NCBI GenBank assembly: GCA_951804945.1
Contig: OX638155.1
Span: 31,000,001 to 31,064,000 of the forward strand
DNA length: 64,000 bases
Source: Podarcis cretensis
Lineage: Eukaryota
Direction of reading: 5' to 3'
Within the stretch, counting starts at the first letter, position 1. Each line of letters begins with the position of its first letter. Shown piece by piece: positions 10,401 to 12,857 of this stretch. Made by a program: the position numbers and the translations under genes. Below the pieces are notes generated by a model, which made no database searches, was not told the DNA's origin, and saw only the letters and a list, made by a program, of their open reading frames with translations.

Positions 10401-12857
10401 TACTATGAAATACTGTCCAGTTCAGTGAGACTTGGTCCCAAGCCATATAGGATTATAGCTATACTGTATTCATGGATCATGTTTCTGTTTGATTCATTTC
10501 TTTAACTGATTGTCCTTATTTAACATGAGTAAGATTCAGACGAGACAAACCCTTGGAGTTTGTCCACCATTATACTGAAATGCAATAAACTCAAAATACA
10601 GCTCAGCTCAGTTGCATTAAATTACTAACTTTATGTGAGTTTAAGGTAAAAAGAGGGGTGGAGGAAGAAGCTGAGGATCAGGTTACAATGTTTATAGCAA
10701 TTGTGCTTTAACGTTTCCTTTTTCAAAAATAGCAGATAGATGTTTTTCTTTAGAGAAATGATTCATGTTTTTCCTCCCCCAGGAGACCTCTACTATGGTT
10801 ATGAATGACGATCTAATAACAGAAGGTAATTTTGATATTGTTAGTACATGCAAGTGGACTTTGATGCTCATCTTAGTTAGGCAAGATCCAACATTGTGTC
10901 AGCAGTTGCAATGGAATTCTTCTTCCTTATCTCCCTCGGCAGCCCCTGTACCCCAGGTCTGCTCCAGAGGGTCCCTCAACCCTCAAGCAGATTTCAGGGG
11001 TATGCAGGGGTGTGTGGAGGAAGGGTAAGTCTCACCGTAAGTGGAAATAACAATTGGATGTTGTCCCCCCCCTTTTTTTCATTCTGCAAATGTACTGCTC
11101 TCCAAAGAAAATATCTGAAATGTTGTTTTACAGCAGGGGTGGGAAACTCCCGTGAATCAAAGTAGTCCTTTAAGCCAGGGGTTGGCAAACTACGGTTCAG
11201 GGGCCAGATGCGGCCCCCCAGGCTCGTAAATCCAGCCCGCGGACCCTGCCGCCCACCCAGTCAATCCTTACGCACTGCAGACATCTTGCCGAGCGGGGAC
11301 TGACTTCAGCAATGCTGGCATCGCTTCTGGGCGGGCGGCGACATGGGCGCAGCTTCGGATTTGCTGCAGGAAGTTCCTGCAGCCAGTCCGAAGCCTTGCC
11401 GCCTGCGCACAGAGGTAAACCCGGTGTGGCCATGGACAGAGAGGCCAGCGGGTGGCAGGTCTGGGCTGCACCATGGGCATCGTGATGGGCGCGTCATGAG
11501 GCTTCAGATGGAGCTTGGCACGCCTGCTGGCCCTGCACCTGGTGCCCAGCTTGGCGCTGCTGCTGGTGGCGCGCTCGGCAGCTGCGCTGGAGGGCGAGCT
11601 GCATGCCGCCTACCCAGCGCTCCGCATGTGTGGCCTGCCCACCGACCTGGCCTCGGACTACGGGCCACAATGCATGGTGCACACTGCCTGGGAGCTCCAC
11701 AGAGACAGGCCGATGGAGCAGCTGCTGCTTGTCAACAACGCCGGTGAGCAGCCATTGCTGAGACGCGCTCCTGAGCGCGTGCAGAGTATGTTCTTCCTCT
11801 AGGTCCGGAGGCAGCTGCGGGACCGGCTTGCAGGGTATTTATATTTTTCAAAATACAGTCCGGCCCCCCACAAAGTCCAAGGGACAGTGGACTGGCCCCC
11901 TGATGAAAAAGTTTGCTGACCCCTGCTTTAGGCCCCTGGCCTTGGGAATTTCCCGGGCTGTGTACTGTCCTTGAGTGTTTTTTGCCTGATTGCAATGTGT
12001 CCTTGAACTGTGGTGATGTCTCTTGCTTATCTGGACACAGGATGGAGAGATGTGTGATGGGCATGGGAACCTCTGGCTTTTGCATAGCTGGAAAGTAGTG
12101 TACTGTAGTGTCATATTTGTTGCTCCATCGCCATTGTTTGCCTTTTGCCACGCTAGCACTATTTAGTCCCAGGGAGGTTATCCTTGAGGGAATGCAGCCC
12201 TCAGATGGAAACAGATTTCCCACTCCAGCATGATAAACACAATCCTTTGCATTCATCCTTTGAAATAAGTTTAACAGAGCTTGCTCCAGGTAAGTTTGTA
12301 TAGCACTGCAGCCAAGCTTTGTTGGAAATTTACTGAATATGAGCATCATAAAAATAAGATTGCGTGCAGTGTAGAATTTTTCTCCAGCAATGTAGCTACT
12401 GCAGGATACAACATAATATGCAAATGTTGCATTCTTTATATAACTTTGTTTAAAAGTTTCCTGGTGTACATGTGGAAGCCCACTGCTATTTTAAAGATGA
12501 CCTCTGAATTTTGTTCAGTGTCAAGAAAACCCTGTTTATCCCTTTTATGAGATAACATAACACAAATTACACAAAAGTCATTAATAACTAGAGAATCTGA
12601 AAATCAAACTCTTTAAAAATCATTTTATGGAGCTTTTGTTTTCCAAAGGCCCCCCCCCCCGGTGTATAGTAGCTGTTTTACTTGATTCCTTGCTCACTGA
12701 TGTTTTGTTTGCTTAAACAGATCCACAGCTCAACATAGACGTTCACAGAATGAACAGAGAATTTATGGTGAGAAGTGAAGAACTCTTTGACACACTTATG
12801 AGCTGTCATTGGCAACCTCTGGATACGGTCACCTCTGAGATCCCTACTGCTTTCTAA
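4453..12857 (+). CDS. C6orf52: C6orf52 homolog / tRNA selenocysteine 1-associated protein 1-like (one RRM, Tyr/Arg-rich low-complexity region, Trnau1ap C-terminal domain)
   Basis: Well-supported exons with consistent phases and GT-AG ends: 7812-7988 ([29 protein letters not shown]...GYSR), 8908-9027 ([10 protein letters not shown]...[16 protein letters not shown]), 9570-9966 ([13 protein letters not shown]...), 10783-10825 ([14 protein letters not shown]), 12721-12857 ([45 protein letters not shown]). Less certain 5' exons: 4453-4464 (MASQ), optional 5294-5356, and 5582-5703. About 335-356 aa. The [15 protein letters not shown] motif is shared by TRNAU1AP and C6orf52; the position head-to-head with PAK1IP1 identifies C6orf52. 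Confidence 0.85.
10062..10301. mobile_element. Tc1/Mariner (Tigger-like) MITE
   Basis: Ends CAATGGTACCTC... / ...GAGGTATGATTG|TA are decayed versions of the CAGTGGTACCTC TIR family also seen at 34624 and 53189. Confidence 0.7.
11176..11925. mobile_element. hAT (Charlie-like) non-autonomous element carrying a captured gene fragment
   Basis: TIRs CAGGGGTTGGCAAAC / GTTTGCTGACCCCTG, with 8-bp TSD CTTTAAGC / CTTTAGGC. Subterminal arms match the MITEs at 25640, 49673 and 55870 in the opposite orientation. Confidence 0.9.
11432..11749 (+). pseudogene. SPR: Sepiapterin reductase (SPR) exon 1 fragment captured inside the hAT element
   Basis: Frame from 11461 reads [69 protein letters not shown]...EQLLLVNNA(G), then G|GTGAGC at 11743/11744. 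This aligns with SPR exon 1 ([24 protein letters not shown]...VPADL...RLLLINNAG). Stop at 11497; ATG at 11432 is out of frame. Confidence 0.85.

Follow-up and report, generated by a model that had tools for sequence, protein, structure and literature searches.

A probable multicopy Pack-hAT transposon carrying the 5′ end of the sepiapterin reductase gene in lacertid lizards

We describe a 750-bp transposable element that occupies positions 11176–11925, on the plus strand, of a stretch of 64,000 nucleotides from the wall lizard Podarcis cretensis (contig OX638155.1, positions 31,000,001 to 31,064,000; this whole stretch is referred to below as the window, and its own numbering is used throughout). 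The element is a non-autonomous member of the hAT superfamily, a miniature inverted-repeat transposable element (MITE), and its interior consists of DNA from a host gene, SPR, a pigment and cofactor gene that encodes sepiapterin reductase. We consider it probable that it is one dead copy of a multicopy Pack-hAT, that is, of a hAT element carrying the 5′ end of the lacertid SPR gene. A preliminary description, made from the letters of the window, had arrived at much the same interpretation, which our analysis largely supports; the size of the captured segment, the start of its reading frame and one of the expected consequences have had to be revised.

Results

Anatomy of the element

The element begins and ends with terminal inverted repeats (TIRs), CAGGGGTTGGCAAACT at 11176–11191 and, on the reverse strand, CAGGGGTCAGCAAACT at 11910–11925, with 14 of 16 bases in agreement. 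The TIRs are immediately flanked by an 8-bp target site duplication (TSD), CTTTAAGC on the left and CTTTAGGC on the right, in which seven of the eight bases agree; by our own arithmetic, the chance of such agreement at fixed positions is about 4e-4. Since 8-bp TSDs and TIRs of the CAG type occur together here, we assign the element to the hAT superfamily, and the 750-bp unit with hAT TIRs and an 8-bp TSD that had been proposed earlier stands at its original coordinates. None of its open reading frames is transposase-like, and 750 bp leave no room for a transposase. In the sequence of their CAGGGGT... termini and in their GC-rich subterminal regions, the ends appear similar to those of the OposCharlie1 (OC1)-type hAT MITEs of tetrapods.

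Matches to the terminal motif number 11 in the window, where 0.8 would be expected by chance. Six of them are both ends of the element and of two MITEs (25640–25944 and 49673–49928), and another is the left end of a third MITE (55870–56118), the right tip of which is eroded. Further matches to the TIR motif, with three mismatches, are located at 26927–26942, 34254–34269, 34978–34993 and 61266–61281; these four may belong to additional MITEs or to remnants of related families.

The three MITEs are empty relatives of the element, 249–305 bp in size, and each has its own 8-bp TSD with seven of eight bases in agreement. That the arms of the element match them, as had been claimed, was confirmed by BLASTN and by alignment. 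The left arm (11176–11244) is 72–76% identical to the three MITEs and the homology ends sharply after ...CCCGCGGAC at 11244; the right arm (~11844–11925) is 79–86% identical to them, with an inner boundary that is ambiguous between 11836 and 11850 owing to a T-rich tract. What is missing from the element is the AT-rich centre of the MITEs (~110 bp), in place of which it has ~590–600 bp of foreign DNA. At 25700–25730 and 49740–49760 the empty MITEs contain a run of T followed by a run of G (T10 G9-10), located where the cargo of the Pack element begins, and a homopolymer tract of this kind could favour breakage or template switching.

The captured segment contains a decayed SPR exon 1

The interior of the element shows no match to the MITEs by BLASTN or in alignments within the window, and its composition is distinct, with a GC content of 63–68% (window, 40%) and an observed to expected CpG ratio of 0.65 (window, 0.33). 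The preliminary description was correct in calling it GC-rich, and we find it to be foreign as well, although its size was put too low, at about 560 bp. Preceding the exon is a 5′ flank with a GC content of 63% and a CpG ratio of 0.74 (computed over 11245–11432); counted from the original ATG it is 187 bp long and not, as had been estimated, about 160 bp. This ATG (MDREASGW...), at 11432, is soon followed by a frameshift near 11453–11460; the frame then passes the internal ATG (11473) and meets a TGA stop at 11497–11499. The decayed SPR frame, its TGA and its splice donor had all been recognised before; the frame that was then described is that of the ATG at 11473, past the frameshift, and the start has to be moved to 11432. 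The exon copy, which also has a 9-bp deletion (LEQ) near 11587, terminates after the first base of a codon (phase 1), at 11743, with a G/GTGAGC donor at 11743/11744. Exon 1 of human SPR, which ends after c.304, has the same phase-1 end.

Several comparisons identify this exon. For the 81 residues that follow the stop, SPR is the only family matched in the PDB (E = 1.8e-7), with an alignment that runs end to end against human residues 20–103. Pfam gives no match for the same 81-residue piece, which is too short and too decayed for adh_short. With the native SPR of Podarcis muralis (P0057) as the tblastn query, residues 2–108 align to 11431–11742 with 64% identity (E = 1e-29); the alignment is collinear and extends exactly as far as the boundary of exon 1. 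The same search finds no match to the other parts of SPR (exons 2 and 3) anywhere in the 64 kb. The expectation that vertebrate SPR exon 1 would be the best match was therefore borne out. The copy departs from the native exon at 34 residues, and at least 20 of these changes are of the CpG-transition type (R to C/H/W/Q/stop, A to T/V, V to M, T to M, P to L and S to L), a signature of the decay expected of a methylated dead copy. Its exon 1 carries a frameshift, a TGA and a 9-bp deletion, exons 2 and 3 are not in the window, and the copy is dead and cannot encode SPR.

Because upstream DNA and intron-like DNA are both included, what was copied was genomic DNA and not mRNA, as the preliminary description had supposed. 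A retrocopy can be ruled out, as the intron and upstream DNA are retained. So can the native SPR locus, as the window contains neither exon 2 nor exon 3 and has a different neighbour, a gene resembling TRNAU1AP/C6orf52.

The captured 5′ flank contains a near-perfect hairpin (11346–11403), ~30–85 bp upstream of the ATG, with arms of 21 nt (11352–11372 and 11374–11394), a folding energy of -24.2 kcal/mol and a z score of -6.6 relative to shuffled sequences. It may be either a structure of the native SPR 5′ untranslated region (5′UTR) or a fold-back scar of the capture. An Rfam search of 11000–12100 placed mir-607 on the hairpin at a sub-threshold level only (23 bits, where the gathering score is 94; E = 0.17), and we take this match to be due to chance.

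Copies of SPR exon 1 are dispersed in lacertid genomes

We looked for other copies with a full HMMER scan of 1.84 billion representatives, using the 81-residue query, and with a profile search. A homologous-protein search with the single 81-residue piece returned P0001 only, and the others came from the profile search and the HMMER scan. In total, 12 further decayed copies of SPR exon 1 were found in lacertids, eight in Podarcis lilfordi, two in P. muralis and two in Zootoca vivipara (Table 1), so that the dispersed family foreseen in the preliminary description does exist. The native SPR of P. lilfordi (P0171) is on a contig of 77.0 Mb, distinct from the contigs of all the copies; the parental gene is thus located elsewhere. 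The closest of the copies, P0001, is 74% identical to that in the window.

The resemblance extends beyond the exon. When aligned to the window by tblastn, P0001, P0004, P0019 and P0033 run beyond the exon into the intron-like stretch, reaching 11799–11829, and P0006 of P. muralis covers 11434–11877 in a single frame, across the exon, the intron-like part and the hAT arm. At the junction of the intron part with the arm, P0006 has 19 residues across, of which 18 are identical, and over 11830–11877, in the hAT arm, it is identical at 16/16 residues. The exon followed by the GTGAGC donor and ~90 bp of intron-like sequence is thus common to the window copy and five others, as expected of DNA of genomic origin, and because P0006 crosses it, the junction between cargo and arm is present at two loci at least. 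It had also been feared that such copies might confuse read mapping at SPR. For short reads and the window copy this is unlikely, given a protein identity to the native exon of only 64–65%.

Two gene models in Zootoca begin with a copy. In the NCBI model P0013 (XP_034995904), the copy leads from its phase-1 donor into a full RPL27-like sequence; in P0032 (XP_034990964), annotated as ‘sepiapterin reductase-like’, it leads from the phase-1 donor into a short unrelated tail. The two models may represent chimeric transcripts or may be annotation artefacts, and they lend no more than indirect support to the suggestion in the preliminary description that such copies might produce RNAs.

The lacertid copies form a single clade

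Maximum likelihood trees were built from exon 1 peptides, with the window copy and 11 of the 12 others; P0019 is too short and was excluded. The 12 lacertid copies come out as one clade (support 96/87) inside a larger group (98/84) that includes the native SPRs of Podarcis, Lacerta and Zootoca. The interior of the copy clade is star-like, and the window copy and P0006 are found in separate branches. At three positions, the copies retain S, H and M (in DLAS, VVH and PME), as do the native genes of Zootoca and Lacerta, and it is the native Podarcis gene that has changed. These retained states are consistent with a segment captured before Podarcis, Lacerta and Zootoca diverged or at an early stage of their divergence. 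A single capture, followed by amplification of the chimera, would be the parsimonious explanation of these sequences.

Genomic neighbourhood and feature list

The gene resembling TRNAU1AP/C6orf52 is on the plus strand, and because it is the neighbour here, the window is not the SPR locus. It was recognised from a weak RRM_1 match at 8831–9187, corresponding to the end of the RRM, and from a Tyr/Gln/Asn-rich tail at 9559–9978. The element lies within this gene or just downstream of it; it is downstream of the exons that are seen and on the same strand. The features of the window and the copies found in other genomes are listed in Table 1.

Table 1. Parts of the element, empty MITEs of the window and annotated SPR exon 1 copies in other genomes
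Feature	Position or location	Strand	Evidence and remarks
Left TSD, CTTTAAGC	11168–11175	.	7/8 bases agree with 11926–11933; adjoins TIR
Left hAT arm (69 bp) with TIR CAGGGGTTGGCAAACT	11176–11244	+	Matches the empty MITEs at their 3′ end, in reverse complement
Captured GC-rich 5′ flank, presumed SPR 5′UTR and core promoter	11245–11431	+	No MITE match; SPR origin presumed from contiguity only
Decayed SPR exon 1	11432–11743	+	PDB match; tblastn with native P. muralis SPR
GTGAGC donor and ~90 bp of intron-like sequence	11744–11835	+	Common to five other copies; presumably from native intron 1
Right hAT arm (~80 bp) with TIR reverse complement CAGGGGTCAGCAAACT	11836–11925	+	Matches the empty MITEs at their 5′ end, in reverse complement
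Right TSD, CTTTAGGC	11926–11933	.	Direct reading of the sequence
Empty MITE, 305 bp, opposite orientation to the element; TSD GTCTACAA/CTCTACAA	25640–25944	+	TIR motif, TSD, BLASTN
Empty MITE, 256 bp; TSD GCTTAAGG/GTTTAAGG	49673–49928	+	TIR motif, TSD, BLASTN
Empty MITE, 249 bp, 3′ tip eroded; TSD ATCTAGTT/ATCTAGCT	55870–56118	+	TIR motif, TSD, BLASTN
Podarcis lilfordi copies P0001, P0002, P0004, P0007, P0014, P0015, P0019, P0033	Seven chromosome-sized contigs: 51.1, 119.7, 71.8, 59.1, 137.0, 85.0 (two copies) and 103.1 Mb		
Podarcis muralis copies P0003, P0006			
Zootoca vivipara copies P0013, P0032			
Phrynocephalus forsythii copies P0010, P0011, P0012, P0017, P0018, P0020, P0023	Contigs of 170, 143 (three copies), 14, 127 and 95.5 Mb		

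Discussion

Origin of the element and of its copies

We suggest that the ~110-bp AT-rich centre of a hAT MITE was replaced by a genomic segment of ~590–600 bp from the 5′ end of SPR. This segment would run from ~187 bp of 5′ flank through all of exon 1 to ~90 bp of intron 1. Template switching while the element was being repaired or replicated may have brought about the capture, and Pack-TIR structures have been attributed to such a process (PMC8277862). Cut-and-paste movement by a transposase supplied in trans from an autonomous hAT element would then have carried the chimera to many chromosomes in an ancestor of Podarcis and Zootoca, with 8-bp TSDs left behind. The copies would afterwards have decayed as methylated junk, mostly by CpG transitions.

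Some of our observations weigh against this interpretation. The TSD of the element has one mismatch. We infer the SPR origin of 11245–11431 and 11744–11835, as well as the exact breakpoints. The other copies are known from annotated short proteins, which makes the copy number a lower bound, and their monophyly is judged from ~108 residues only and may be inflated by parallel CpG decay. Finally, P0001 may be the P. lilfordi ortholog of the window copy and not a paralog.

We have considered three other explanations. The native locus might itself be the source element, if two MITEs or MITE halves flanked the native SPR exon 1 and the transposase mobilised them together as a composite by means of their outer ends; capture by gap repair would then not have been required. 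An old pair of MITEs flanking SPR could explain recurrence across lineages, and SPR exon 1 has indeed been duplicated alone in Phrynocephalus forsythii (at least seven copies) and in Rhineura floridana (one copy), in each case from the species' own gene. However, the arms of the window element are terminal pieces only, of 69 and ~80 bp, with no inner TIRs, and the lacertid copies constitute one star-like clade, where a composite source would have them budding from the native lineage at differing times. We therefore regard composite mobilisation as unlikely. It is also conceivable that a break in a resident MITE was patched in situ with SPR 5′ DNA, and that the other copies have unrelated origins, for instance in segmental duplication or on other carriers; most animal Pack-TIRs are in fact single-copy (Tan et al. 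2021, PMC8277862). Such an origin is very hard to reconcile with P0006, which has the same junction of intron part and arm and yet belongs to another branch of the copy clade, and with the occurrence of copies on seven chromosome-sized contigs of one genome, and we rate it as highly improbable.

The third explanation, to which we give practically no credence, is that a GC-rich open frame in a long hAT element merely happens to look like a short-chain dehydrogenase. The silence of Pfam on the 81-residue piece would agree with this, but the alignment to native lacertid SPR (E = 1e-29) is collinear and ends at the exon boundary, SPR is the sole PDB match, and the tree places the copy inside lacertid SPR. 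Chance resemblance is already refuted by the PDB search and by tblastn with native SPR. A multicopy Pack-hAT that carries the SPR 5′ end remains the probable explanation.

Relation to known gene-capturing transposons

Cut-and-paste gene capture is known from animals, and a survey of 100 animal genomes recorded 370 Pack-TIRs, of which 208 were Pack-hATs (Tan et al. 2021, Nat Commun, PMC8277862). Whereas in plants such capture is routine, in animals amplification afterwards is rare, as only four of the 370 were multicopy, three from frog and one from alligator (PMC8277862). One of these, Pack-hAT-N8_XT of Xenopus tropicalis, carries 291 bp of the CAPSL 5′UTR and is present in three copies (PMC8277862). 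Like the multicopy Pack-hATs of animals, the SPR family, judged by the window copy, is a hAT element that is non-autonomous, bears TIRs and an 8-bp TSD and has a 5′ fragment of a host gene in place of its centre; copies of its cargo are likewise present on several chromosomes. It differs from Pack-hAT-N8_XT in being lacertid, in having at least eight annotated copies in one genome, and in carrying a whole coding first exon together with its splice donor and upstream flank. It is probably an unusually copy-rich multicopy Pack-hAT in an amniote, of a kind that is already known and is rare in animals, and with a dozen or more copies it is among the larger animal examples.

The Pack-MULEs of rice and maize are likewise TIR transposons that capture and amplify genomic, intron-containing gene fragments. 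They favour the GC-rich 5′ ends of genes. Unlike the SPR family, they are Mutator elements of plants with 9-bp TSDs and often contain fragments of several genes. Closer in host are the vespertilionid bats, in which, according to work attributed to Thomas et al. in 2014, Helitrons reportedly amplify captured promoters and first exons and can seed chimeric transcripts. Both are cases of vertebrate DNA transposons amplifying captured gene starts; Helitrons, in contrast, are rolling-circle elements without TIRs or TSDs.

In the literature on SPR, Podarcis and transposable elements, and on hAT gene capture in squamates, we found no description of a family that carries SPR. The preliminary description was right to connect regulatory variation at SPR with colour: the upstream region of the gene underlies the orange morph of wall lizards, and the paper that reports this does not mention transposon-borne copies (PMC6431182). 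Those who work on the SPR locus should know that diverged look-alikes of exon 1 are scattered genome-wide and have been annotated as ‘SPR-like’ or hypothetical proteins. The lacertid family also offers a tractable system in which to study how Pack-TIRs arise and whether exon shuffling results from them in an amniote.

A more speculative proposal is that the SPR Pack-hAT spreads a working module (CpG-island promoter, first exon and splice donor), which would seed chimeric lacertid genes such as the two Zootoca models, and that the SPR 5′ end is a recurrent capture hotspot in squamates, in view of the separate amplifications in Phrynocephalus and Rhineura. We consider this proposal doubtful as it stands.

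Stray SPR exon 1 copies in other squamates

The searches also returned SPR exon 1 copies from squamates other than lacertids. In the agamid Phrynocephalus forsythii, at least seven annotated proteins are decayed copies of exon 1 of the species' own SPR (Table 1), and two of them read through a common intron start. These copies group with the native Phrynocephalus SPR (100/99), and the amplification is therefore independent of that in lacertids. The amphisbaenian Rhineura floridana adds a third lineage with such a copy: P0009, a 113-residue ‘sepiapterin reductase-like’ protein on a 240 Mb contig, represents a decayed SPR exon 1. In the tree its partner is the native Rhineura SPR (98/89), which is on another contig, of 128 Mb. 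A single ancient capture, common to the lacertids and the agamids, is ruled out by the tree, as the copies of each lineage group with its own native SPR. The independent amplifications in Phrynocephalus and Rhineura suggest a broader pattern, and the amplification of SPR exon 1 across squamates merits a genome-wide survey.

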